Source of the DNA: Leidyana gryllorum EB-2025a | Taxonomy: Eukaryota; Protista; Apicomplexa | Assembly (NCBI GenBank): GCA_048772705.1 | Contig: JBLWGC010000014.1 | Location: forward strand, 1 to 10,396 | DNA: 10,396 bases | Reading direction: 5' to 3' | Shown: positions 1 through 10,396 of the stretch, piece by piece | How positions within the stretch are numbered: position 1 is the stretch's first letter | Layout of the letters: every line of letters starts with the position of its first letter | The notes under the pieces: model-generated | What the model saw: the letters and a program-made list of their open reading frames with translations, nothing else | The model's database searches: none | What the model was told of the DNA's origin: nothing | Position numbers and translations under genes: made by a program

Positions 1-21
1 GTCCGTGGCGTGTTCAGAGCG

Positions 22-93
22 TCCGAGATAGCATAGTGGTTACTATTTTCGCATGTCACGCCTAAGAAGCAGGCCCGATTGCCGGTAAATGAG
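22..93 (+). pseudogene. tRNA-Asp(GTC) pseudogene
   Basis: TCCGAGATAGCATAGTGGTTA A-box and TGTCACGC anticodon region; same 5' flank (GAGCG) as the Asp-scaffold copies at 397 and 4029; T-arm and 3' acceptor strand destroyed. Confidence 0.7.
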
Positions 94-114
94 TCTGGAA
101 CGGGGGATGGTTTT

Positions 115-186
115 GGGCCTATGGCGCAACGGTAGCGCGTCTGACTCCAGATCAGAAGGTTGGGTGTTCGAATCACTCTGGGCTCA
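115..186 (+). tRNA. tRNA-Trp(CCA)
   Basis: 72 nt cloverleaf: GGGCCTA/TGGGCTC acceptor, TGGCGCAACGG A-box, TCTGA-CT-CCA-GA-TCAGA, GTTCGAATC; T5 run at 200-204. Confidence 0.93.
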
Positions 187-222
187 ACCGGACTCTATGT
201 TTTTCCCGTTTGGGACGCAACC

Positions 223-302
223 TGACAAAAGTGGGATTCGAACCCACGACCTTTCGGACTCCGGTCTGAGCACAGCGCCTCAGACCACCCGGTCATCTTG
301 CC
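223..302 (-). pseudogene. tRNA-Leu(CAG), degenerate copy
   Basis: GGCAAGATGACCGGGTGGTCTGAGGCGCTGTGCTCAG...GGTTCGAATCCCACTTTTGTCA; paralogue of 4119-4198 with D-arm and anticodon-stem mismatches. Confidence 0.8.
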
Positions 303-396
303 GGGATGTTGTTGGCTCGCCGCTCCACGCGTGTTCTATCCCTGGAATCTCAAGATGGAAGGACTCTTGGGGTTGGAGGCCGGCGTATCCAGAGCG

Positions 397-468
397 TCCG
401 GGATAGTATAGCGGTTAGGATTTCCGCCTACCATGCGGAGGACCCGGGTTCGATTCCCGGTCTCGGAG
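397..468 (+). tRNA. tRNA-Asp scaffold with anticodon ACC (nominal Gly)
   Basis: Intact acceptor TCCGGGA/TCTCGGA+G and T arm GGTTCGATTCC; TCCGC-CT-ACC-AT-GCGGA; flanks match Asp(GTC) at 3958-4029. Confidence 0.8.
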
Positions 469-523
469 CACACTTGGTTTCGCTTGAGATTCTCTCCTTT
501 GGTTCTCGCTGAAAGTTGCGAGC

Positions 524-596
524 TACAGCCACCAAGGATCGAACTCGGGAACTTCTGCGTGTGAAGCAGACGTCGTAAGCACTAGACCATGGCTGC
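524..596 (-). tRNA. tRNA-Val(CAC)
   Basis: GCAGCCA/TGGCTGT+A, TCTGC-TT-CAC-AC-GCAGA, GTTCGATC; D-loop GG changed to GC, so possibly impaired. Confidence 0.82.
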
Positions 597-659
597 ACGG
601 AGCTTCCGGACTGTGAAAGCGGCGTGTGTCTCTGGAAACAGGTATCTGATGGAGGGCAG

Positions 660-890
660 AAGGCTCGCACGGGTGCGAGGAATGACACCGAATGTCACAC
701 CCTCTTTGCCTCGGCCGTGGATCGAACACGGGACTTCCAGATCTTCAGTCTGGCGCTCTCCCAACTGAGCTACCGAGGCGGTAGGTAGTCATGGAAGGCG
801 GTGAAAATAAGCACTTATCGCGGCCGTATGTGAGACCCACTCCTCGCAGCATGACGGAATCGACAGTTGCCAACTTGCCCGAGTGAGGAA
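660..890 (+). repeat. Phe-Ser module, inverted copies at about 6910-7130 and 7945-8180
   Basis: Shared gene order and spacer motifs such as TTATTTTCACCGCC and GGTGTCATCCCTCGC. Confidence 0.85.
707..779 (-). tRNA. tRNA-Phe(GAA)
   Basis: 73 nt canonical cloverleaf GCCTCGGTAGCTCAGTTGGGAGAGCG...CTGAAGA...GTTCGATCCACGGCCGAGGCA. Confidence 0.95.
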
Positions 891-907
891 CTAGTGTAGA
901 TCCAGCA
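869..907 (+). pseudogene. tRNA-Ser remnant with internal deletion
   Basis: GCCAACTTGCCCGAGTG 5' end joined to GTGTAGATCCAGCA T-arm remnant; same context as Ser 6847-6928 next to Phe. Confidence 0.65.
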
Positions 908-959
908 CATCTTGCGCCCTGTGGCTTCACATACGGTTCAGCAAGCTTGACTAGGGCTG

Positions 960-1027
960 CTCGCGCGCCGCGAAGCCGCGGTTTTCCCTTAAAAAGTCTG
1001 GCGCTCTACCGACGGAGTTGGGGCGGC
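960..1027 (-). pseudogene. tRNA-Lys(TTT)-like pseudogene
   Basis: GCCGCCCCAACTCCGTCGGTAGAGCGCCAGACTTTT; 3' half unrecognisable; 3' boundary approximate. Confidence 0.6.
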
Positions 1028-1196
1028 AAAAAAGCTCGCCCTGTACCCAGGAAGGCCCAAGATTCCACGATCAATACAAATGGAATTTGTTACGAAGTCC
1101 GAATCTGTGTCAGAGATTTATTCACTTGGTCAGGCCGACATACCATTCTTTCCAAGACGATACGGCTCTCGGCCGAAGCCTCAACTCGAGCACGTG

Positions 1197-1269
1197 TCCA
1201 CTGTAGTCTAAGTGGCTAGGATATGCGGCTTTCACCCGCACCATCCGGGTTCAAGTCCCGGCAGTGGAA
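1197..1269 (+). tRNA. tRNA-Glu(TTC)
   Basis: TCCACTG/CAGTGGA+A, TGCGG-CT-TTC-AC-CCGCA, CCGGGTTCAAGTCCCGG. Confidence 0.9.
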
Positions 1270-1345
1270 GTCATTGAACTAGTCGACCAAAGTGCCACAC
1301 TAATCTCCGTGAATAGCCATTCTTTCGTTATCTCCGGCTTACAGT

Positions 1346-1417
1346 GCCTTCTTAGCTTAGGGGCAGAGCATTCGCTTAGTAAGCGAAAGGTCGCCGGGTC
1401 GATTCCGGCAGAAGGCT
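1346..1417 (+). tRNA. tRNA-Thr(AGT), T54G variant
   Basis: Identical to 6671-6742 except T-loop GTCGATT instead of TTCGATT. Confidence 0.85.
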
Positions 1418-1431
1418 TTGATGCATCAAGA

Positions 1432-1504
1432 GGGCTGTTCTGGGAATCGAACACAGTACCTCTTGCATGCTAAGCGAGCGCTCTACCATTTGAGCTAGTC
1501 GCCC
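1432..1504 (-). pseudogene. chimeric tRNA: Ala(AGC) 5' part fused to Pro 3' part
   Basis: GGGCGACTAGCTCAAATGGTAGAGCG...TTAGCAT (Ala) then GTTCGATTCCCAGAACAGCCC, identical to the 3' end of Pro 7594-7665; acceptor stem does not pair fully. Confidence 0.8.
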
Positions 1505-1619
1505 ATTCAGCAAATCTCAGTACATCCAGTTCTTTTCACATGGTATGACCAATCTCCCAACTGCATCGATCACTTTCACCAGTTTGTGCTCCACTTTGCA
1601 CGAACGAAGGCACGCAGGA

Positions 1620-1692
1620 AACGGCTGGAGGGACTCGAACCCTCAACCTTTGCCTTAGGAGGGCAACGCGCTATCCATTGCGCCACAACCGC
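1620..1692 (-). tRNA. tRNA-Arg(CCT)
   Basis: GCGGTTG/CAGCCGT, TGGCGCAATGGATAGCG, TTGCC-CT-CCT-AA-GGCAA, GGTTCGAGTCC. Confidence 0.92.
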
Positions 1693-1792
1693 ATTCGGCA
1701 CGCATCCGACTTTTGACTGGGACGAACGCGGGCTGCCCCGAGGTGTCTCCTCTTTCACCCAACCAGTATCCAGATGACCGAAGCCTATCCAT

Positions 1793-1865
1793 GGTGCGGT
1801 GGCCTAATGGATACGGCATCGGTCTTCGGAAGCGGGAGTTGTGGGTTCGAGTCCCATCCGCATCA
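1793..1865 (+). tRNA. tRNA-Arg(TCG), slightly degenerate
   Basis: GGTGCGG/CCGCATC+A, CT-TCG-GA loop, GGTTCGAGTCC; one anticodon-stem mismatch. Confidence 0.82.
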
Positions 1866-1947
1866 TAGCCTCTCACTCGGAATACGTTCCGTTTCGACCG
1901 AGGCAAGCTTGCTAGCTGTATGGGGAGCCACTGCCGCGCATGTCGAG

Positions 1948-2011
1948 TTGAAGTGCTAGTGATATGATTTTCCTTCGCTTGTGGGAGTGTTCGATTCGAT
2001 TCCCGAGCAGT
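1948..2011 (+). pseudogene. highly decayed tRNA-Pro-like remnant
   Basis: CTAGTGATATGATTTTCCTTCG...TTCGATTCCCGAGCAGTC resembles Pro; follows Arg(TCG) as in the inverted Arg-Pro module at 2258-2468; ends approximate. Confidence 0.4.
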
Positions 2012-2173
2012 CTGTTTTTGAGTATGTTGCAGACAGCTCAACGCAGAAAACGCCCGAGTCTCTCGGGGTGCTGCAGCTCTTACGAAATTGCACTTGTGGT
2101 CTAAGGGTAAGTTACGACCTTGGAAGGGTCCAAGAGAACAAGGGCCGTTGAGAGTGTACACCGTCGCACAACC

Positions 2174-2246
2174 CGGTCCTGGCAGGTTTCGAACCTGCGA
2201 CTTTGTGGTTAACAGCCACACGCTCTGCCGACTGAGCTACAAGACC
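2174..2246 (-). tRNA. tRNA-Asn(GTT)
   Basis: GGTCTTG/CAGGACC+G, TAGCTCAGTCGG, TGTGG-CT-GTT-AA-CCACA, GGTTCGAAACC. Confidence 0.93.
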
Positions 2247-2257
2247 CAGTTACAATG

Positions 2258-2299
2258 TCCTTCCACCCGAGGAAGAATCATCCACTAGACCGAACAGCT
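2258..2299 (-). pseudogene. tRNA-Pro(CGG) 5' half
   Basis: AGCTGTTCGGTCTAGTGGATGATTCTTCCTCGGGTGGAAGGA aligns to Pro 7594-7665 up to the variable loop. Confidence 0.7.
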
Positions 2300-2396
2300 C
2301 CCGTTACGGCACTGAGAGGTGGGAGAACTGTCCGCATCTCAACAGCCAGCGTTTCCGCTTCCTTCATCATGTCCGCGAGTGAGATGTCAGAATCTA

Positions 2397-2468
2397 TGAT
2401 GCGGATGGGACTCGAACCCACCACTCCCGTTCCGCAGCCAGATGCCCCATCCATTAGGCCACCGCACC
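2397..2468 (-). pseudogene. tRNA-Arg pseudogene (inverted paralogue of 1793-1865)
   Basis: Same acceptor and T arm as Arg(TCG); anticodon arm disrupted (CT-GCG-GA). Confidence 0.75.
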
Positions 2469-2482
2469 ATGGACAGGCTGCG

Positions 2483-2508
2483 CTGAGTTCGATTCCCAGA
2501 ACCAGCCC
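2483..2508 (+). pseudogene. tRNA-Pro 3' half
   Basis: CTGAGTTCGATTCCCAGAACCAGCCC matches the Pro 3' end; the following TCGACCCGAC also follows Pro 6380-6442. Confidence 0.6.
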
Positions 2509-2589
2509 GTTTTGCTCTCGATCGACCCGACACTCCACCTTTTTTAAGACGGTACAGCTCTCCACCGAGGCTCCACTTCCCGGATCTTG

Positions 2590-2647
2590 TCCACTACAGT
2601 CTAAGTGGCCAGGTATGCGGCTCTCACCCGCACGCTTCAAGTTCGAG
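2590..2647 (+). pseudogene. tRNA-Glu(CTC) pseudogene, 3' truncated
   Basis: TCCACTACAGTCTAAGTGG...TGCGG-CT-CTC-AC-CCGCA; 5' flank homologous to 1155-1196. Confidence 0.72.
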
Positions 2648-2715
2648 TAGGTCAATGCGATCCCAGTGAATTACTCCAGCATCGCCTTCTGCCCACCGGA
2701 CCGCCGGACTGGAGC

Positions 2716-2788
2716 AGGCGTCACTGGAACTCGAGCACAGAACCCCCACTTCGGTAAAACGATACCATATCCATCAGGCCATGGTGCC
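2716..2788 (-). pseudogene. tRNA-Arg(ACG)-derived pseudogene
   Basis: Colinear with 5129-5201 but with many substitutions in all arms. Confidence 0.72.
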
Positions 2789-2933
2789 GGTCGGCAGGGG
2801 GAGTAAGCTGAGGTACCTGGGAGAAATAACACCCAAGCTTGCGGTGGGATAGAAACGAACCGCAAGAAATCCGATGCCACAACCATCCACAATGCGGGCG
2901 GAGGATCGCAACCATGTTTAGGCTGATGACTGA

Positions 2934-3005
2934 AGCCTCCTGTCGGAATCGAACCAGCGACTTTTCGCTTATAAAGCGAATGCTCTACCCCTAAGCTAAG
3001 GAGAC
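2934..3005 (-). tRNA. tRNA-Thr scaffold with anticodon TAT (nominal Ile)
   Basis: TTCGC-TT-TAT-AA-GCGAA; positional paralogue of Thr(TGT) at 10065-10136. Confidence 0.8.
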
Positions 3006-3069
3006 ATTCCCTGTCTCGACCCATATGAGTTTTTCATGCTGGGAATTGCATTAGTTCCACCACATCGCA

Positions 3070-3151
3070 CGACAACTGCTGGATTTAAACCAGCGCGGGC
3101 CACGCCCAGTAGATTTCTAGTCTACCCCCTTAACCACTCGGGCAAGTTGCC
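3070..3151 (-). tRNA. tRNA-Ser(AGA), C56T variant
   Basis: 82 nt with long variable arm; GGCAACT/AGTTGTC+G, GTAGA-CT-AGA-AA-TCTAC; T-loop TTTAAAT. Confidence 0.85.
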
Positions 3152-3212
3152 ACCTGTCGAACTCGGCATTTTGCGGCCAATGGTTTCACATACGGTTCAG
3201 CAAGCTTGAGTT

Positions 3213-3277
3213 CTCGCGCTGCCCGAACCCGCGGTCTCCCCTCAAGTCTTGCGCTCTACCGACGGACTTGGGGCGGC
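3213..3277 (-). pseudogene. tRNA-Lys-like pseudogene
   Basis: Paralogue of 960-1027 and 9791-9857, with 2 nt missing from the anticodon loop. Confidence 0.55.
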
Positions 3278-3377
3278 AACGAAGCTCGGACTTAGTAACA
3301 AATTCCATTCGTATTGATCGTGGAATCTTGGGCCTTCCTCGGGTACAGGGCGAATCTGTATCAGAGATCCACTCACT

Positions 3378-3451
3378 TGGTCACGCGCGGGCTCCAGTCG
3401 CGGACTCGGAAGTTATCAGGCTCACGCTCTAACCGACTGGAATATGTGACC
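3378..3451 (-). pseudogene. tRNA-Ile(GAT)-like pseudogene
   Basis: GGTCACA...CAGTCGGTTAGAGCGT, CT-GAT-AA loop, CGTGACC+A end; B-box lost. Confidence 0.65.
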
Positions 3452-3695
3452 GCTTCAGAGTTGAGGTGAACAGTCACTAGCCGAAGGAGCGAGTGATGTG
3501 CACAGCAAAACCCCATGACTGGGATTGAAGCGGCCGCTCAGACCTTCGTCCACCCCGCCAAACAGTCATTCCGAGAGCCAAATACTGACATCGAGAAGGG
3601 GGTCTACCTACACCACTGACAGTTCGCACGGGAACCCCGATGGAAGGTGCGCTGGTCCGGATGGCTGTATCGACTCTTTTGGGATGGGCTGAACC

Positions 3696-3767
3696 GGTTG
3701 CGTGGTGTAGTGGTTAGCACTGGAGACTCTGAATCTCCCGACCTGGGTTCGATTCCCGGCGCGACCT
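3696..3767 (+). tRNA. tRNA-Gln(CTG)
   Basis: GGTTGCG/CGCGACC+T, TGGTGTAGTGG, GGAGA-CT-CTG-AA-TCTCC, GGTTCGATTCC. Confidence 0.93.
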
Positions 3768-3830
3768 CGGAACTGGTCCTCACTACTCCTGAAATTTCGC
3801 CACTTCTCTTGGGCTGCGGGGACCGTCCGT

Positions 3831-3902
3831 GCAGCTATGGTCTAGTGGTTACGACGTCTGCTTCGCACGCAGAAGTCCCGATTTCGATCCTCGGTTGCTG
3901 TA
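3831..3902 (+). pseudogene. tRNA-Val scaffold with anticodon CGC (nominal Ala), degenerate
   Basis: Inverted paralogue of Val(CAC) 524-596; TT-CGC-AC loop; mismatches in acceptor and T stem. Confidence 0.75.
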
Positions 3903-3957
3903 GCTCGCAACTTTCAGCGAGAACCGAAGCAGAGAATCTCAAGCGAAACCACCTGCG

Positions 3958-4029
3958 TTTCGAGACCGGGAATCGAACCCGGGTCTTCCGCGTGACAGGC
4001 GGAGACACTAACCACTATACTGACTCGGA
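3958..4029 (-). pseudogene. tRNA-Asp(GTC), damaged acceptor stem
   Basis: TCCGC-CT-GTC-AC-GCGGA and intact T arm; two acceptor mismatches and T8C. Confidence 0.8.
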
Positions 4030-4118
4030 CGCTCCGAACACGCCGGCCTCCAATCCCAGAAGTCTTTCTATTTCGGCTCACGGACAAAATGCGTGGAGCG
4101 ACGAACCAACAAGACTGC

Positions 4119-4198
4119 GGCAAGATGGCCGAGTGGTCTAAGGCGCTGTGTTCAGGCCGCAGTCCGAAAGGGCGTGGGTTCGAATCCAACTCTTGTCA
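4119..4198 (+). tRNA. tRNA-Leu(CAG)
   Basis: GGCAAGA/TCTTGTC+A, TGGCCGAGTGGTCTAAGGCG, TT-CAG-GC loop, TCC-GAAA-GGG variable arm; one T-stem mismatch. Confidence 0.87.
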
Positions 4199-4258
4199 GC
4201 CATGGTATCGGCACTCGGTCAGCCACTGGATGCAATAGGTCTTCCATGTTGTACGCAT

Positions 4259-4331
4259 GGGCGGCTAGCTCAGATGGTGCAGCGCTCGCTTTGCATGCGA
4301 TAGGTACTGGGATCGATATCCAGGTCGTCCA
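4259..4331 (+). tRNA. tRNA-Ala(TGC)
   Basis: GGGCGGC/GTCGTCC+A with G3.U70, TT-TGC-AT loop, eukaryotic Ala-type T-loop ATCGATA; minor mismatches. Confidence 0.85.
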
Positions 4332-4420
4332 AACTCCATGCAACTTTGGCTGGAGAGAAACGGCTGGCGCGTGGTCCAAAAACGTGAATGTTGTTATTTC
4401 AATCTAGTCGAGAAGCCGCC

Positions 4421-4493
4421 GCCTACGTGGCGCAATGGATAGCGCGTTGGACTTCTAATCCAAAGGTTGCGAGTTCGAGTCTCGCCGTAGGTA
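4421..4493 (+). tRNA. tRNA-Arg(TCT)
   Basis: GCCTACG/CGTAGGT+A, TTGGA-CT-TCT-AA-TCCAA, GCGAGTTCGAGTCTCGC. Confidence 0.93.
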
Positions 4494-4557
4494 GCCAAAT
4501 GCTCAGCACTTTACTTCGATGATTTGGCTGACTAGCTGCCTTCGCTGTGGAATGTTG

Positions 4558-4628
4558 CCCACTGTAGTCTGAGTGGCTAGGATATGCGGCCTCACCCGCA
4601 AGCTCCGCGCTCAAGTCCGGCAGTGGAA
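4558..4628 (+). pseudogene. tRNA-Glu(CTC) pseudogene
   Basis: Paralogue of 1197-1269; 6-nt anticodon loop and broken T arm. Confidence 0.75.
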
Positions 4629-4716
4629 GTCAGTGGTTGAAGTCAGTGGAATACTTGAGCAAAGTGCCCAGCAATCTCCGTCAATAGTGTCTGATTCGTG
4701 ATCTTCGGCTTGCATT

Positions 4717-4788
4717 GCCTTCTTAGCTTATGGGCAGAGCATTCGCTTAGTAAGCGAGAGGTCGCCAGTTCGATTCCGGCAGAAGGCT
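4717..4788 (+). tRNA. tRNA-Thr(AGT), variant
   Basis: Three substitutions relative to 6671-6742, including a T-stem mismatch. Confidence 0.82.
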
Positions 4789-4855
4789 TTGATGCATCGA
4801 TAGGCTTATAAAGAATGGCTGTCACCAGGTACAAGATTGAACAGGATCGTGTTCC

Positions 4856-4917
4856 GCATCTGTGGTCTAGTGGAAGAGTCTCTCGCTGCCATCGAAATAA
4901 CCCGTGGTTCCGATTCC
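4856..4917 (+). pseudogene. tRNA-Gly(GCC) pseudogene, 3' truncated
   Basis: GCATCTGTGGTCTAGTGG start, TCG-CT-GCC-AT-CGA, damaged GGTTCCGATTCC. Confidence 0.65.
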
Positions 4918-4922
4918 AACCG

Positions 4923-4995
4923 TGGGAGTGGAGAGGATCGAACTCTCGACTTCAGGATTATGAAACCTACGCGCTACCGACTGCGCTACACTCCT
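4923..4995 (-). tRNA. tRNA-Met(CAT), elongator type
   Basis: AGGAGTG/CACTCCC+A (1:72 mismatch), TAGCGCAGTCGGTAGCGC, TT-CAT-AA, GAGAGTTCGATCCTCTC. Confidence 0.85.
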
Positions 4996-5128
4996 TAATG
5001 GAACTTCTCTCGATGTATCTCCTCCTGTCAAAAGTGTGCACGGGGATGCTGTCCACAACAAGGACAGCCAGCTGAGACAAAAAATGAGTTGCAGCAATTG
5101 TGAGGGGCTGGAACCCGACCACTCGCCC

Positions 5129-5201
5129 AGACGCTACTGGGACTCGAACCCAGAATCCCAGGTTCCGTAGACCGATGCCATATCCATTAGGCCATAGCGC
5201 C
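5129..5201 (-). tRNA. tRNA-Arg(ACG)
   Basis: GGCGCTA/TAGCGTC, TGGCCTAATGGATA, CT-ACG-GA, CTGGGTTCGAGTCCCAG; one anticodon-stem mismatch. Confidence 0.87.
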
Positions 5202-5273
5202 AATCAACGGAGCCGTCGAATGAAAGTGTGTACCCATCAAAAGAAAGTTCCAATAGAGACACCGGAGACATAT

Positions 5274-5345
5274 TGGGCGAGCCAGGAATCGAGACTGGGC
5301 TTGCACGGACACAACGTGCTGTCCTAGCCACTAGACGACTCGGAC
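5274..5345 (-). pseudogene. tRNA-His(GTG) pseudogene
   Basis: GCACG-TT-GTG-TC-CGTGC intact; acceptor mismatches and mutated B-box (GTCTCGATT). Confidence 0.75.
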
Positions 5346-5432
5346 AAATCTTTGGGCGAGGCTGTAGAGGTAGCGAAGCATCGATTAGGATGGGATGGAA
5401 CAGGAGCGTCAGACGAACTACGTTGTAAGAAG

Positions 5433-6012
5433 TGTTGTAACCCCAAGTCGCTACTCAAGGGGAACGAGGCCCAGTTCTCATCTCTGCATACTTTCGACCA
5501 CAAGTCAGACTTAGGAACCAAGTTAGTATTTTTGCCCACAAGTCTACCATGAATATGTCGCACACGACGGCGCAAAACAAGAACTACGACTTGTTGTACC
5601 AAGTGCAAAAGTTATCTTAGGCCGCCTCTTGCCTAGTCCAACTCTGACTTAGCCAACTTTGCTTGCGTGTGTCTCTCACTCTGGTGTCCCTCTCACTCCA
5701 CCCATGTGCCAGTCACTCGCACTCTTGCGGAGCCTCGCGCTGGACACACACGGTAGTTCTCCCCGACACCACACTCTGATCATTCATGCGAGTGTCTGCA
5801 CAGTTACACTGTCACAGAGAGTTCAGACCACTAGGGCGCATTAGCCTTTACGCTTTAGTAGTAGTTGCTTTACGTTCCTTAATAATGCCCTATATAAGTG
5901 CCAAATATGTAGGGAAGTATCCAGATGGATGTTAATTCGATTGGAAATTTCACCAAGTCGGATTTGGCAACCCGATAGGAAGTTGACCATCAGGCAAACA
6001 CGAACTACAACA
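5433..6012. mobile_element. solo LTR-like insertion (580 bp)
   Basis: Begins TGTTGTA, ends TACAACA (perfect 7-bp inverted termini); AGAAG direct repeats at 5428-5432 and 6013-6017; tRNA-free; TATA-containing motif shared with 8717-9524. Confidence 0.8.
5888..5933. promoter_or_regulatory. 46-bp conserved LTR motif with TATATAA, copy 1
   Basis: 46/46 identical to 9244-9289; regulatory role inferred. Confidence 0.55.
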
Positions 6013-6206
6013 AGAAGTCCACTCATCAACTTCCGGTGGGACGGAATTTACTCGTCGAATATCTGATGTCACCACTACAGACAGATTCGTTGCCATCTGA
6101 GCACGCCGGGCCGTAAGAGTACTTCGGGGCGGTACACCGCACCCAGAACGACATCGACAGTCGCAACGGAAGCCGTTCACACGCTGGAATTCAGAAGAAA
6201 AGTGAC

Positions 6207-6290
6207 GCACAGATGCCCGAGTGGTCTAAGGGGCCAGACTCAAGTTCTGGTAGGCGCAAGTCTGCATGGGTTCGAATCCCATTCTGTGCA
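6207..6290 (+). tRNA. tRNA-Leu(CAA)
   Basis: 84 nt; GCACAGA/TCTGTGC+A, CCAGA-CT-CAA-GT-TCTGG, AGGC-GCAA-GTCT variable arm, GGTTCGAATCC. Confidence 0.95.
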
Positions 6291-6379
6291 ACGGCCATCA
6301 TCCCCGCAAGTAGGCTGGAGAAGGCCACAGTGGATTCTAGTCTCCATTTGTATATCCGCTTGCATGCACCCAAGTATTC

Positions 6380-6442
6380 GGCTATTGCTCTGGATCCTTC
6401 CTTGGGGTGGAAGCGTCCTGGGTTCGATTCGCAGAACAGCCC
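6380..6442 (+). pseudogene. tRNA-Pro pseudogene (anticodon GGG, D arm partly deleted)
   Basis: CTTCC-TT-GGG-GT-GGAAG and GGTTCGATTCGCAGAACAGCCC match Pro 7594-7665. Confidence 0.72.
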
Positions 6443-6550
6443 TAATGGTCGTCGGTCGACCCGACGGGACAAGTTGCCCTCAGAACCAACACAGCATTTC
6501 ATTAGCCCACTTCGGTAGGGCAGTCAGGGCAACTTCCATGTTGCAGACTG

Positions 6551-6621
6551 AGGAGTGTAGCTCAGTGAAAAGTGTTGGGCTCATAATCCAAAGGTCTGTC
6601 GATCGAAACGACGCACTGCTA
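6551..6621 (+). pseudogene. initiator tRNA-Met(CAT), degenerate
   Basis: A1-T72, GGG-CT-CAT-AA, eukaryotic iMet T-loop ATCGAAA; G:G acceptor mismatch and D-loop GG lost. Confidence 0.75.
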
Positions 6622-6670
6622 AGTGTGCGCAGAAGGGGAACAGTTATAGAATAGATTGCCTCGCGAGCAC

Positions 6671-6742
6671 AGCCTTCTGCCGGAATCGAACCGGCGACCT
6701 TTCGCTTACTAAGCGAATGCTCTGCCCCTAAGCTAAGAAGGC
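6671..6742 (-). tRNA. tRNA-Thr(AGT)
   Basis: GCCTTCT/AGAAGGC+T, TTCGC-TT-AGT-AA-GCGAA, GCCGGTTCGATTCCGGC. Confidence 0.93.
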
Positions 6743-6846
6743 ATTCTCTGTCTCGATCCATATGAGGGTTTGATGCTGGGAATAGCATCATTTCCACCAC
6801 AGAATTCATGCGTGAGTTGGCGTGTGACCCCTCCAATCACATCGCA

Positions 6847-6928
6847 CGACAACTGCTGGATCTGCACCAGCGCGGCCCAGGCCCAGTTGAATTCCAATCT
6901 ACCCCCCTCCCCACTCGGGCAAGTTGGC
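6847..6928 (-). pseudogene. tRNA-Ser pseudogene (anticodon GGA)
   Basis: Colinear with 3070-3151; T-loop TGCAGAT and multiple stem mismatches. Confidence 0.78.
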
Positions 6929-7014
6929 AACTGTCTTCCGGCATGCGGCGAAGAGTGGCCCCACATACGGCCGCGATAATTGCTTATTTTCACCGCCTCC
7001 CGTGCCTACCTACC

Positions 7015-7087
7015 GCCTCGGTAGCTCAGTTGGGAAAGCGCCAGACTGAAGATCTGAAAGTCCCGTCTTCGATCCACGGCCGAGGCA
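7015..7087 (+). tRNA. tRNA-Phe(GAA), variant
   Basis: Three substitutions relative to 707-779, including G53C in the B-box. Confidence 0.82.
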
Positions 7088-7215
7088 GAGAGGTTGTGGC
7101 ATTTGGTGTCATCCCTCGCAGCCGTGCGACTCGAGCTTGCCAGCAGCGTTCCGCAGATTTTCAATGGGCAATCGTCCACTCCAAGCACGGCATGCAATAG
7201 CTCTTCGAAGTTGGA

Positions 7216-7311
7216 GACCGCTAGCTCAAAGGGTAGAGTGCACAGATCGCGGGGTGGTCCGAGGTCCAAACTCGAATTTTGATGCCGCAAGTCTGCATGG
7301 CTCCGAATGTC
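7216..7311 (+). pseudogene. composite tRNA remnant (unassigned 5' fragment plus Leu(CAA)-like remnant)
   Basis: CTAGCTCAAAGGGTAGAGTG A-box-like segment, then CGCAAGTCTGCATGG shared with Leu 6207-6290; ends approximate. Confidence 0.45.
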
Positions 7312-7351
7312 AGCCACTCTTGTCGATTCCGCTGTAGAGCGAGACCACGAG

Positions 7352-7424
7352 AACGGTGGGCGGGACTCGAACCCACAACCTTTGCCTCCGGAGCGCAACA
7401 CGCTATGCATTGCGCCACCACCGC
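7352..7424 (-). tRNA. tRNA-Arg(CCG), slightly degenerate
   Basis: GCGGTGG/CCACCGT, CT-CCG-GA, GGTTCGAGTCC; D-loop GG changed to GC and one anticodon-stem mismatch. Confidence 0.8.
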
Positions 7425-7593
7425 ACAATCCACAGCCTCACTGTCTGCGACGCCTGAGTCGTGATATCGCCTGGCCCCGCTATTTCGATTAAGCAGTTGT
7501 CAAGTGGACGTGGTAGGCGGAGTTCGAAAGACTCCTTATCTTATTTGAGACAGGGGTTCAACTCTCCTAGACCCTCGTCAGAGCCTAGCAAAA

Positions 7594-7665
7594 GGGCTGT
7601 TCTGGGAATCGAACCCAGGACTCCTTCCACCCTAAGGAAGGATCATACCACTAGACCAAACAGCC
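7594..7665 (-). tRNA. tRNA-Pro(AGG)
   Basis: GGCTGTT/AACAGCC+C, TGGTCTAGTGG, CTTCC-TT-AGG-GT-GGAAG, GGTTCGATTCC; followed by TTTT. Confidence 0.94.
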
Positions 7666-7894
7666 GACTGATCGGTGGTGCAAATTGCTGGTAGAGTCGG
7701 GAGACTGGTCATAACATGTCAAGAACCACTAAATGCTATGGGGTCTGCACAGCGGGCGACTAGCTCAAATGATATAGCACTCGCTTGACATGCGAGAAAT
7801 ACTTGGATCAATGCCCAGGTCGTCCAAGCTTCTAACGGCTGCACCTCCGGTATCTGAAAACAGAGTCACGACCGAATGGAGTTGACGCCCGATC
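7661..7894 (+). repeat. Pro/Ala spacer plus Ala block, inverted copy at 10163-10396
   Basis: 15 differences in 234 bp; the copy runs off the window end. Confidence 0.92.
7754..7826 (+). pseudogene. tRNA-Ala(AGC)-derived pseudogene (anticodon now GAC)
   Basis: GGGCGAC/GTCGTCC+A with G3.U70 retained; D-loop and T-loop mutated. Confidence 0.78.
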
Positions 7895-7902
7895 ACATTA
7901 CA

Positions 7903-7962
7903 CGACAACTGCTGGATTCGAATCACCGCGAGCCAGACCCTTAATCACTCGGGCAAGTTGCC
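7903..7962 (-). pseudogene. tRNA-Ser pseudogene lacking the anticodon arm
   Basis: 60 nt versus 82 nt for 3070-3151; the 22-nt gap spans the anticodon stem-loop. Confidence 0.78.
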
Positions 7963-8050
7963 AACTGTTGAATTGGACATCCCGCGGGCAGTGGCTCCAC
8001 AGAGGGCTGCGGTGAGTGCCTATCTTCACCGCGTTTCAAGGCTTTCTAGC

Positions 8051-8123
8051 GCCTCGGTAGCTCAGTTGGGAGAGCGCCAGACTGAAGATCTGGAAGTCCC
8101 GTGCTCGATCCACAGCCGAGGCA
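8051..8123 (+). tRNA. tRNA-Phe(GAA), variant
   Basis: Two substitutions relative to 707-779 (T54C and a T-stem mismatch). Confidence 0.82.
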
Positions 8124-8170
8124 GAGAGGTTGTGGCATCTGGTGTCAAAATCCCTCGCGCCCGTGCGAGG

Positions 8171-8194
8171 GTTCTGCCCCTCAGCTAACCAGGC
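8171..8194 (-). pseudogene. tRNA-Thr 5' fragment
   Basis: GTTCTGCCCCTCAGCTAACCAGGCA plus CTGTCTCGATC flank aligns to 6719-6758. Confidence 0.55.
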
Positions 8195-8261
8195 AGGCCC
8201 TGTCTCGATCACATAACGGTATGGCTGAGGCCAACACCTTCGAACGTTTCATTCCATCTTC

Positions 8262-8333
8262 AGGGCACGCGCGGAGTTGAACCACGGACTTGCTGATCTG
8301 CAGTCAGCTGCTCTACCACTGAGCTACGTACCC
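8262..8333 (-). tRNA. tRNA-Cys(GCA)
   Basis: GGGTACG/CGTGCCC+T, TAGCTCAGTGGTAGAGC, GCTGA-CT-GCA-GA-TCAGC, GGTTCAACTCC. Confidence 0.94.
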
Positions 8334-8397
8334 AGAACTGCCCCTCATACTCACTCAACTCGGTCCTGTCTCCTCACTTGAAGCAAAACCGCCGTGT

Positions 8398-8424
8398 ACG
8401 TCGTGACCACTAGACCATAGCTGC
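8398..8424 (-). pseudogene. tRNA-Val 5' fragment
   Basis: GCAGCTATGGTCTAGTGGTCACGACGT; marks the end of the inverted duplication. Confidence 0.7.
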
Positions 8425-8488
8425 ACGGATGGTCCCCGCAGCCCCAGAGGAGTGGCGAAGTTTCAGGGAGTACGGAGGACCAGTGCCA

Positions 8489-8560
8489 AGGTCGCGCCGG
8501 GAATCGAACCCAGGTCGGGAAATTCAAAGTCTCCAGTGCTAAGCACTACATCACGCAACC
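8489..8560 (-). tRNA. tRNA-Gln(TTG), degenerate paralogue of Gln(CTG) 3696-3767
   Basis: Four substitutions versus 3696-3767, including anticodon C34T and two A-box changes. Confidence 0.78.
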
Positions 8561-8716
8561 GGTTCAACCCATCCCAAAAGAGTCGGTACAGCCATCCGGA
8601 CCAGCGCACCTTCCGTCGGGATTCCCGTGCGAACTGTCAGTGGTGTAGGTACACCCCCTTCTCGATGTCAGTATTTGGCTCTGGAATGACTGTTTGGCGG
8701 GGTGGACGACGGTCTG

Positions 8717-9524
8717 TGTTATTTGCCGTGCTCCCACTCTCCAGAACGATGGCTTGTCGTCCGAACCCTTCGTCCCGGGTATTCTGGAGGACATAGTTGG
8801 AAGAAATATTTCATGCATTGCGGACGAGCCGCACACGGAAAAGACAACACGAGGACTACCTGAGTCTTCCGGGGAAAAGACTTCTTGTATCCTGTTGTTG
8901 TAGAACTCTGACCGTCGCTCCTGTGTCCGTGTCCTCTCGCCGTCCGCTGCGACTCTACGCTGGCGTCGTCCAGCCTAGGGCTGTCCAACTGAGTAGTAGC
9001 TGTAGCCGTAGCGTCGAGCCAAAACCCAATACCAGCTAGAGTCCGGACCGTAGTCGGGTCGTCGAGGCGCACGTCCTGAGGGCGAGGTAGAGTACGCCGG
9101 GAGGTGACTGTAGAGGCCAAGGGTCGTAGTCGGGACGGTAGCGTGTGGTAGCGGGCGTGTGTGTAGGTCGTAGTAGGGCACGGGCGTGGTAGTGGGAGCA
9201 GGGATTCCGTAGGTGATAGGTCGTCCCCCTTTTCAGAGGTACTCCCTATATAAGTGCCAAATATGTAGGGAAGTATCCAGATGGATGTTCATCCCACTGG
9301 CGGAATCACATAGAGTCAGAATCCGGAACCCGATAGTGAGGCACCCGATAGTTATGGGACACACTCATAGGTTGAACGGGGACTCGGAGTCGAGCCTGCT
9401 GATCCACTCGCCCTACGACAGCACTACCACACTAAGCTTAGCTCTTCAGCTGATATGTTCTTGATCAGTTCATGTCGCTTGTGCTACCTTGACTCCGGTC
9501 GTACGCCCGACTGCGGATATAACA
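8717..9524. mobile_element. solo LTR-like insertion (808 bp)
   Basis: TGTTAT...ATAACA termini; GTCTG duplicated at 8712-8716 and 9525-9529; empty site present once as CAGAC at 3539-3543 in the inverted paralogue. Confidence 0.9.
9244..9289. promoter_or_regulatory. 46-bp conserved LTR motif with TATATAA, copy 2
   Basis: 46/46 identical to 5888-5933; regulatory role inferred. Confidence 0.55.
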
Positions 9525-9616
9525 GTCTGAGCGGCCGCTTCAATCCCAGTCATGGGGTTTTGCTGTGCACATCACTCGCTCCTTCGGCTAGTGACTGTTC
9601 ACCTCAACTCTGAAGC

Positions 9617-9690
9617 GGTCACATATTCCAGTCGGTTAGAGCGTGAGCCTGATAACTTCCGAGTCCGCGACTGGAGCCCGCGCGTGACCC
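9617..9690 (+). pseudogene. tRNA-Ile(GAT)-like pseudogene
   Basis: One difference from 3378-3451. Confidence 0.65.
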
Positions 9691-9790
9691 AGTGAGTGGA
9701 TCTCTGATATAGATTCGCCCTGTGCCCGAGGAAGGCCCAAGATTCCACGATCAATACGAATGGAATTTGTTACTAAGTCCGAGCTTCGTT

Positions 9791-9857
9791 GCCGCCCCAA
9801 GTCCGTCGGTAGAGCGCAAGACTTTTGAGGGGAGACCGCGGGTTTGGGCAGCGCGAG
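9791..9857 (+). pseudogene. tRNA-Lys(TTT)-like pseudogene
   Basis: GCCGCCCCAAGTCCGTCGGTAGAGCGCAAGACTTTT; 3' half decayed. Confidence 0.6.
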
Positions 9858-9918
9858 AACTCAAGCTTGCTGAACCGTATGTGAAACCATTGGCCGCAAT
9901 ATGCCGAGTTCGACAGGT

Positions 9919-10000
9919 GGCAACTTGCCCGAGTGGTTGAGGGGGTAGACTAGAAATCTACTGGGCCTGGCCCGCGCTGGTTTAAATCCAGCAGTTGTCG
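9919..10000 (+). tRNA. tRNA-Ser(AGA), C56T variant
   Basis: Two differences from 3070-3151; same TTTAAAT T-loop. Confidence 0.83.
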
Positions 10001-10064
10001 TGCGATGTGGTGGAAATAATGCAATTCCCAGCATCAAAAACTCATATGGGTCGAGACAGGGAAT

Positions 10065-10136
10065 GCCTCCTTAGCTTAGGGGCATAGCATTCGCTTTGTA
10101 AGCGAAAGGTCGCTGGTTCGATTCCGACAGGAGGCT
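10065..10136 (+). tRNA. tRNA-Thr(TGT)
   Basis: GCCTCCT/AGGAGGC+T, TTCGC-TT-TGT-AA-GCGAA, GGTTCGATTCC; one T-stem mismatch. Confidence 0.87.
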
Positions 10137-10230
10137 TCAGTCATCAGCCTAAACATGGTTGCGATCGGGCGTCAACTCCATTCGGTCGTGACTCTGTTTT
10201 CAGATACCGGAGGTGCAGCCGGTGGAAGTT

Positions 10231-10303
10231 TGGACGACCTGGGCATCGATCCCAGCATCTCTCGCCTGCTACGCGAGTGCTACATAATTTGAGCTAGTCG
10301 CCG
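10231..10303 (-). pseudogene. tRNA-Ala(AGC) pseudogene
   Basis: Inverted paralogue of 7754-7826; G1C, D-loop GG lost, loop GT-AGC-AG. Confidence 0.78.
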
Positions 10304-10396
10304 GCTGTGCACACCCCATAGCATTTAGTGGTTCTTGACATGTTATGACCAGTCTCCCGACTCTACCAGCAATTTGCACCACCGATCAGTCGGCTG

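Follow-up and report, generated by a model that had tools for sequence, protein, structure and literature searches.

Patchy divergence of a tRNA-pseudogene pair within near-identical flanks, and no general acceleration of tRNA bodies, in a sampled tRNA-gene array of Leidyana gryllorum

Loci transcribed by RNA polymerase III (Pol III) are a described target of transcription-associated mutagenesis; for tRNA loci, Thornlow et al. (2018; PMC6130373) reported mutation rates elevated 7-10-fold in human and, in several species, the strongest divergence in the 5′ inner flanks. Paralogous tRNA genes are also known to undergo concerted evolution through ectopic conversion, including the “remolding” of anticodons (e.g., PMC4981973), and gene arrays built by tandem or segmental duplication may evolve by the birth and death of their copies. 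Here, we relate these systems to a tRNA-rich region of the apicomplexan Leidyana gryllorum EB-2025a (GenBank assembly GCA_048772705.1, contig JBLWGC010000014.1). An earlier note, made from the sequence alone, had claimed that tRNA bodies of this region diverge faster than their spacers between duplicated blocks, the reverse of purifying selection, and had proposed that redundant copies are mutated while they are transcribed and slow down once their promoter boxes die. Had it been right, Pol III-associated mutagenesis could have been read directly, and free of selection, from thousands of redundant tRNA copies.

The analysed stretch of DNA (the window) covers positions 1 to 10,396 of the contig (C14 below), which belongs to an assembly of 15.5 Mb in total. 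It carries 31 tRNA genes called by ARAGORN and 33 Rfam tRNA matches, distributed over both strands, together with many internal repeats, direct as well as inverted, and is a piece of a huge, reshuffled tRNA-gene array. For the general tests, the window and a set of fetched loci (L001-L071) were merged into 46 pieces of 140,021 bp altogether, which contain 519 ARAGORN tRNAs; intact bodies make up 28% of this sequence, tRNA-like remnants 15% and spacers 57%. This sample corresponds to perhaps 6% of the arrays and was chosen around the Pro-Ala-pseudogene module described below. From all-against-all alignments, 74 disjoint nearest pairs were selected in order of closeness, such that no base entered more than one pair; therefore, the contrasts between bodies and spacers are roughly independent. 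As an edge guard, at least 40 homologous spacer columns were required on both sides of each counted position. Odds ratios of body versus spacer are Mantel-Haenszel estimates, and their CIs were obtained by bootstrapping over pairs. The pairs were binned by overall identity, which replaced bins by spacer divergence, because the latter bias spacers downward. Bodies were regarded as intact when ARAGORN called them in both copies of a pair.

Pairwise alignment of positions 7661-7894 with the reverse complement of 10163-10396 yields 15 substitutions, 11 of them in the 73 nt of an Ala-like tRNA body (7754-7826) and four in the 161 nt of its flanks (Fisher p=0.00066). The flank differences are situated at 7745, 7828, 7833 and 7835, the last three within 9 nt of the 3′ end of the body. 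The other pair put forward is a 640-bp duplicate delineated by repeats and alignments, whose first copy (2904-3543, forward strand; inverted repeats I1 and I2, multi-copy comparison) contains a Thr-type gene, Ser(AGA) and two tRNA remnants, and whose second copy (9525-10166, reverse strand) carries Ser(AGA) at 9918-10001 and Thr(TGT) at 10065-10136, both according to ARAGORN. The alignment of 2904-3543 with 9525-10166 in reverse complement contains 14 substitutions, plus an indel of 2 bp; five of the 14 fall in the 72-nt Thr-type body at 2934-3005 (p=0.014) and one in the tRNA-like remnant at 3377-3451, whereas the last 123 columns are free of them. These substitution counts reproduce exactly those given in the earlier note, as does the placement of three of the four Ala-pair flank differences near the 3′ end, and its caution about the small sample was right. 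The 640-bp pair as a whole differs at 9/296 positions of its pooled tRNA-like sequence and at 5/344 positions of spacer (p=0.19).

Judged by the conserved tRNA features that they have lost, both Ala-like bodies of the window are tRNA pseudogenes, so that purifying selection would not be expected in either. The body at 7754-7826 (forward strand, A type) retains an Rfam tRNA match of 39.3 bits and has no ARAGORN call. In turn, the body at 10231-10303 (reverse strand, B type) is called by neither program, and its matches of at least 95% identity, at 14 places of the genome, all belong to the B family. Changes were read against the intact Ala(AGC) body of a functional gene of the same genome (L014, 545-617). 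Common to both types, which derive from this gene, are G19A, G22T, G26A and G46A. The A type further carries A34G and G35A, by which its anticodon becomes GAC, as well as G45A, G51T and G57A; its G18G19 is degraded and its B box contains G57A, and the G3:U70 pair is retained. The B type retains the anticodon AGC and further carries G1C, G18T, A21G, T32G, T38G and A48G.

Both pseudogenes are part of a module (7594-7897 for the A type) that consists of an intact tRNA-Pro(AGG) gene on the reverse strand (7594-7665; ARAGORN, Rfam 52.7 bits), a spacer whose distal part spans 7666-7744, the Ala-derived pseudogene, positioned head-to-head with the Pro gene, and a distal 3′ spacer (7836-7897), at the end of which the homology with the second copy and the repeat arm end (7897). 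The second copy, of B type, is inverted (10160-10396, reverse strand; inverted repeat I3, 93%, and alignment) and cut by the window end. Among 826 candidates, at least 41 are copies of the 237-bp block with 91-100% identity, and the module forms three subfamilies: a majority type, the A type (4-5 copies in the sample) and the B type. The two window copies thus represent different subfamilies, and the 11 body differences between them define these subfamilies: they became fixed prior to the amplification of each one and do not represent recent private substitutions. On a tree of 40 module copies, the number of Fitch steps per site amounts to 0.36 for the Pro body, 0.27 for the first spacer, 0.42 for the Ala pseudogene and 0.44 for the second spacer; the pseudogene body compared with its flanks gives 0.42 vs 0.35 steps per site (ratio 1.23, permutation p=0.21). 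On the branch of the majority subfamily, the pattern is even reversed: about 12 changes fall in the flanks vs about 1-2 in the body.

Two further features of the module concern decoding. The Ala-derived body of the majority subfamily at L014 1594-1666 (C65:3773-3845) is called tRNA-Val(AAC) by ARAGORN and keeps the alanine identity pair G3:U70; at least 24 copies in the sample are similar to it. Its D loop is degraded and the gene is probably dead; if expressed, it would be a chimeric tRNA able to put Ala at Val codons. In turn, the Pro gene of the module (7594-7665 and its homologues in L005-L040) reads AGG, TGG, CGG or GGG. Two linked changes accompany these wobble variants, the distribution of which is discordant with the module tree, and this looks like isoacceptor switching through exchange or recurrent mutation.

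The differences between the two window copies are confined to one patch. All 15 lie in the 91 bp from 7745 to 7835 (forward strand), i.e., the body and 9 nt on either side, where 14-15/91 positions differ vs 1-2/213 elsewhere (p=2-4e-7, with boundaries chosen post hoc), and the block around the patch is otherwise 0-1% diverged. Segment by segment, the A type differs from full-length B copies at 0/72 positions of the Pro body, 0/79 of the spacer 7666-7744, 1/9 of positions -9 to -1, 11/73 of the body, 2-3/9 of positions +1 to +9 and 1-2/62 of the spacer 7836-7897.

Two other kinds of copy of the module are clear mosaics, in which neighbouring segments have different nearest relatives and the junctions are situated at the edges of the body or close to them. 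In the copy at C61:69794 (L043), the sequence from the body onward is identical to the B type (0/151 differences), vs 37/152 differences upstream (p=1e-12), a part that instead shares 94.7% identity with an Ala(CGC)-type module (L023); the two parts join within about 8 nt of the 5′ end of the body. The copies on C43 and C147 (L005, L006) differ between 7716 and 7845 from the A type at 3-4/130 positions vs 9-10/130 from the majority type, and are majority-like outside this segment (p=0.013 and 0.033).

The states distinguishing A from B were polarised against the intact Ala(AGC) module (L014, 384-623), which identifies the flank states of A and B as ancestral. On the A side, there are six derived states, five of which (body positions 34, 35, 51 and 57, plus 7828) also occur in the C43 and C147 copies; two are also found in the majority subfamily, the outer flanks of which differ. 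The B side possesses nine private derived states (7745, body positions 1, 18, 21, 32, 38 and 48, 7833 and 7835), which is nine in the 91-bp patch vs 1-2 in 213 bp of flank. For these nine, no donor was found among the best 40 genome matches or among 17 Ala-like bodies of other context, in which B alleles occur only at positions 21 and 32, common to Ala(TGC)-type copies. Compared with the majority type, B differs at 14/91 positions of the patch vs 11/213 of the flanks, i.e., about threefold (p=0.005). We also considered conversion from Ala genes of other contexts as the cause of the whole A/B difference and rejected it, as most alleles are absent in the 17 bodies.

We regard patchwise exchange among the module subfamilies, by gene conversion or recombination, as the probable origin of the focal pair. 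Recently copied DNA would account for the near-identical flanks of the two window copies, and the 91-bp patch would be of much older divergence. Such patches would have passed between subfamilies by gene conversion over short tracts or by recombination, with the junctions located where tRNA bodies begin or end. In the simplest history, a module with B flanks would have become the A type when sequence from a C43/C147-like lineage overwrote its body patch; a foreign patch of this kind, set in recently shared flanks, would place old divergence inside young ones. The B side would in turn have acquired its states by lineage-specific substitutions fixed before the B subfamily amplified. Both the direction and the mechanism of the exchange are our reading of these patterns, which is limited by the nine B-side states without a donor and by tests of the C43 and C147 copies that reach p=0.01-0.04. 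Gene conversion among tRNA paralogues, mentioned as an alternative in the earlier note, agrees with the mosaics and with the five of six A-side variant alleles recovered in other copies, and does not account for the nine B-side states.

A Thr gene of the window provides a second example of patchwise exchange. Thr(AGT) at 4717-4788 and its closest flank partner show seven differences, three of which are the very states that separate AGT from CGT isoacceptors. The flanks of this gene and of a Thr(CGT)-like gene of L029 (C226:24411-24484) are 96-98% identical, and Thr bodies mosaic for AGT and CGT states are present elsewhere in the sample. Similar to the ectopic conversion and remolding described for tRNA paralogues (e.g., PMC4981973), tRNA-sized patches move in this array, the histories of bodies and flanks disagree, and isoacceptor states (AGT/CGT in Thr, AGG/TGG/CGG in Pro) swap within constant flanks. 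Yet, in contrast to that system, the process operates here inside a very large scrambled array and on pseudogenes as well as genes, recent duplicates become more divergent and not more alike in the focal case, and one of the two patches lacks a donor among the matches searched.

Over many copies, bodies and spacers of young duplicates in the 140 kb diverge equally, which is the outcome that the earlier note had named as a refutation of its claim. For the 38 pairs of at least 95% identity, all bodies taken together show 116/11968 differences vs 152/16292 in spacers (odds ratio 1.00, CI 0.76-1.26), with 0.88 (CI 0.65-1.17) for intact and 1.17 for pseudogene bodies. At 80-95% identity, the odds ratio for all bodies drops to 0.63 (0.51-0.78), and separately it amounts to 0.45 for intact and 1.16 for pseudogene bodies. 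There is thus no general tendency of tRNA bodies to outpace their spacers. Young duplicates evolve neutrally along their entire length; with increasing age, pseudogenes continue to do so, whereas intact genes show conservation. The excess in the focal Ala pair is real at its coordinates, yet it is an exception that was picked out. The headline of a general body acceleration opposite to purifying selection does not hold in these data, and the proposed slow-down after promoter death is equally absent, young pseudogenes (1.17) being no slower than intact genes (0.88). Similar to birth-and-death evolution of arrays, young copies are neutral, some decay to pseudogenes and the surviving intact copies are conserved; a point of difference is that the long-term conservation of intact bodies is here partly a survivor effect, because intactness was defined by ARAGORN calls in both copies.

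A nominal body excess did appear in pairs of at least 95% identity when the edge guard was omitted. On 107 kb, it reached an odds ratio of 1.38 for intact bodies (p=0.026), and on 140 kb 1.19 for intact bodies and 1.34 for pseudogenes, neither significant; in all cases it vanished with the guard. The excess arises because alignments run into non-orthologous tRNA bodies of the same family at the ends of blocks. Block junctions often lie inside tRNA bodies, and naive estimates of body divergence are inflated in this way. In L020 3145-3225 (C81:30464-30544), compared with L013 within blocks of 98.4% identity, homology decays inside the Leu(CAG) body, with eight differences bunched at one end. We also determined the occurrence of the exact alleles of differing intact bodies in unrelated contexts: in this small sample, both alleles were found there in 0/50 cases and one allele in 8/50, which shows that most young differences between intact bodies are private.

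Apart from patchwise exchange, the focal pair could owe its patch to localised hypermutation, e.g., transcription-associated, by which redundant Pol III-transcribed copies would mutate across the unit and their bodies outrun the spacers. We consider this account possible but doubtful. The 15 differences fill exactly the interval from -9 to +9 around the Ala-like body, and as this is the expected Pol III transcription unit, local hypermutation fits the extent of the patch equally well; it would also agree with the lack of a donor, among the best genome matches, for the nine B-side changes, and with four private changes in the Thr-type gene at 2934-3005, all of them G:C>A:T. Against it stand the absence of an overall acceleration of young bodies, be they intact or pseudogenes, the failure of pseudogenes to slow down as predicted, and the reversed pattern on the branch of the majority subfamily.

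The mutation spectrum is also at odds with localised hypermutation. Bodies have a transition/transversion ratio of 1.1-1.8 and spacers one of 1.0-1.4, and CpG transitions account for a share of 0.13-0.17 in both. Among 144 polarised body changes, read on the tRNA sense strand, 27 are G>A and 19 C>T, as base composition predicts, and the polarised changes of spacers include 24 G>A and 27 C>T. In the 140-kb sample, no excess of C>T and G>A was found in bodies relative to spacers; neither the mutation spectrum nor the CpG share nor the balance of G>A and C>T on the sense strand distinguishes bodies from spacers. Mutation during transcription, the main proposal of the earlier note, is not borne out by this spectrum or by the odds ratio of intact young bodies. 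CpG hypermutability was considered separately as a cause and rejected on the basis of a CpG observed/expected ratio of 0.87-1.0 in all classes and the equal CpG-transition share. Among the transversions of bodies, small counts on the sense strand are uneven (G>T vs C>A, 13 to 2; T>A vs A>T, 10 to 2), so that a strand asymmetry is possible before correction for multiple comparisons.

The one signal in the sample that resembles transcription-associated mutagenesis is a weak, twofold excess just upstream of intact tRNA genes. In comparison with distal spacer, their 10 upstream nucleotides show an odds ratio of 2.07 (CI 1.05-3.52) at ≥95% identity and of 1.71 (1.10-2.57) at ≥90% identity, values that rest on 18-30 substitutions, and the divergence profile peaks at -6 to -10. 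Positions 8041-8050 are an example of such a segment in the window. In the same 140 kb, no excess was found in the 3′ inner flank (odds ratio 0.91-1.00), which speaks against hypermutation, nor in the flanks of pseudogenes. The preponderance of the 5′ over the 3′ flank and the location just upstream of intact genes agree in direction with the published signature (PMC6130373). The array departs from that signature in several respects: the excess is about 2-fold and not 7-10-fold, bodies of young, effectively unconstrained duplicates show none, an excess of C>T/G>A is missing, and intact and dead genes do not differ. As a proxy for activity, the comparison of ARAGORN-intact genes with pseudogenes in the sample revealed no difference in the direction that transcription-associated mutagenesis predicts.

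Chance combined with case selection, by which two reported pairs happened to show a body excess among many that could have been chosen, seems unlikely to us as an explanation. Among the ten internal duplicates of the window, bodies are significantly more diverged than spacers in a single one and significantly less so in three, and in 192 tests of bodies against the spacers of their own pair one outlier was found at p<0.001, no more than expected. The Thr(TGT)-derived gene at 2934-3005 (reverse strand), which reads TAT and is called Ile(TAT) by ARAGORN, was polarised against eight other copies; its four private changes (2962, 2972, 2987 and 3004) give 4/72 in the body vs 6/568 elsewhere in 2904-3543 (p=0.018). 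The p values of this case (0.014-0.018) are uncorrected, and, with p=0.19 for all tRNA-like sequence of the pair, its excess is within what multiple looks would produce. The Ala case, however, survives correction for 10-20 comparisons (0.00066 x 20 = 0.013), is far stronger against the full 304-bp shared block (p about 1e-7), and consists of fixed subfamily states, not of scattered private hits.

A distinctly unlikely variant is that single redundant copies occasionally suffer bursts of substitution limited to the Pol III transcription unit, from about -9 to about +9. The B-type patch and the Thr-type gene at 2934-3005 would then be two such bursts, caused by episodic transcription-associated damage or by a process disabling mis-decoding copies, and the upstream excess would be their steady-state trace. 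Finally, sequencing or assembly errors in structured, repetitive DNA are barely conceivable as the source of the A/B differences. In their favour, one may cite the high repetitiveness of the arrays and the duplication of part of the window on contig C2; yet all A and B states recur identically on several independent contigs (the 7754-type body on C14, C2 and twice on C61; the 10231-type body, at ≥95% identity, in 14 places), which excludes this suggested refutation. As for contig C2, its segments 556-3792 and 4743-5567 are an inverted copy of window positions 6161-9399 and 4386-5210 at 99.8-100% identity; a segmental duplication of very recent date could explain this, as could a contig that is redundant or allelic.

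Patchwise exchange, our preferred reading of the focal pair, bears on how these arrays are to be studied. Patchy exchange decouples the history of a tRNA body from that of its flanks, and pairwise comparisons of duplicated blocks in such arrays mislead unless mosaic structure and block edges are controlled. With these taken into account, the array is well suited to the measurement of conversion tracts and of a possible, weak mutagenesis signal in the 5′ flank of tRNA genes.
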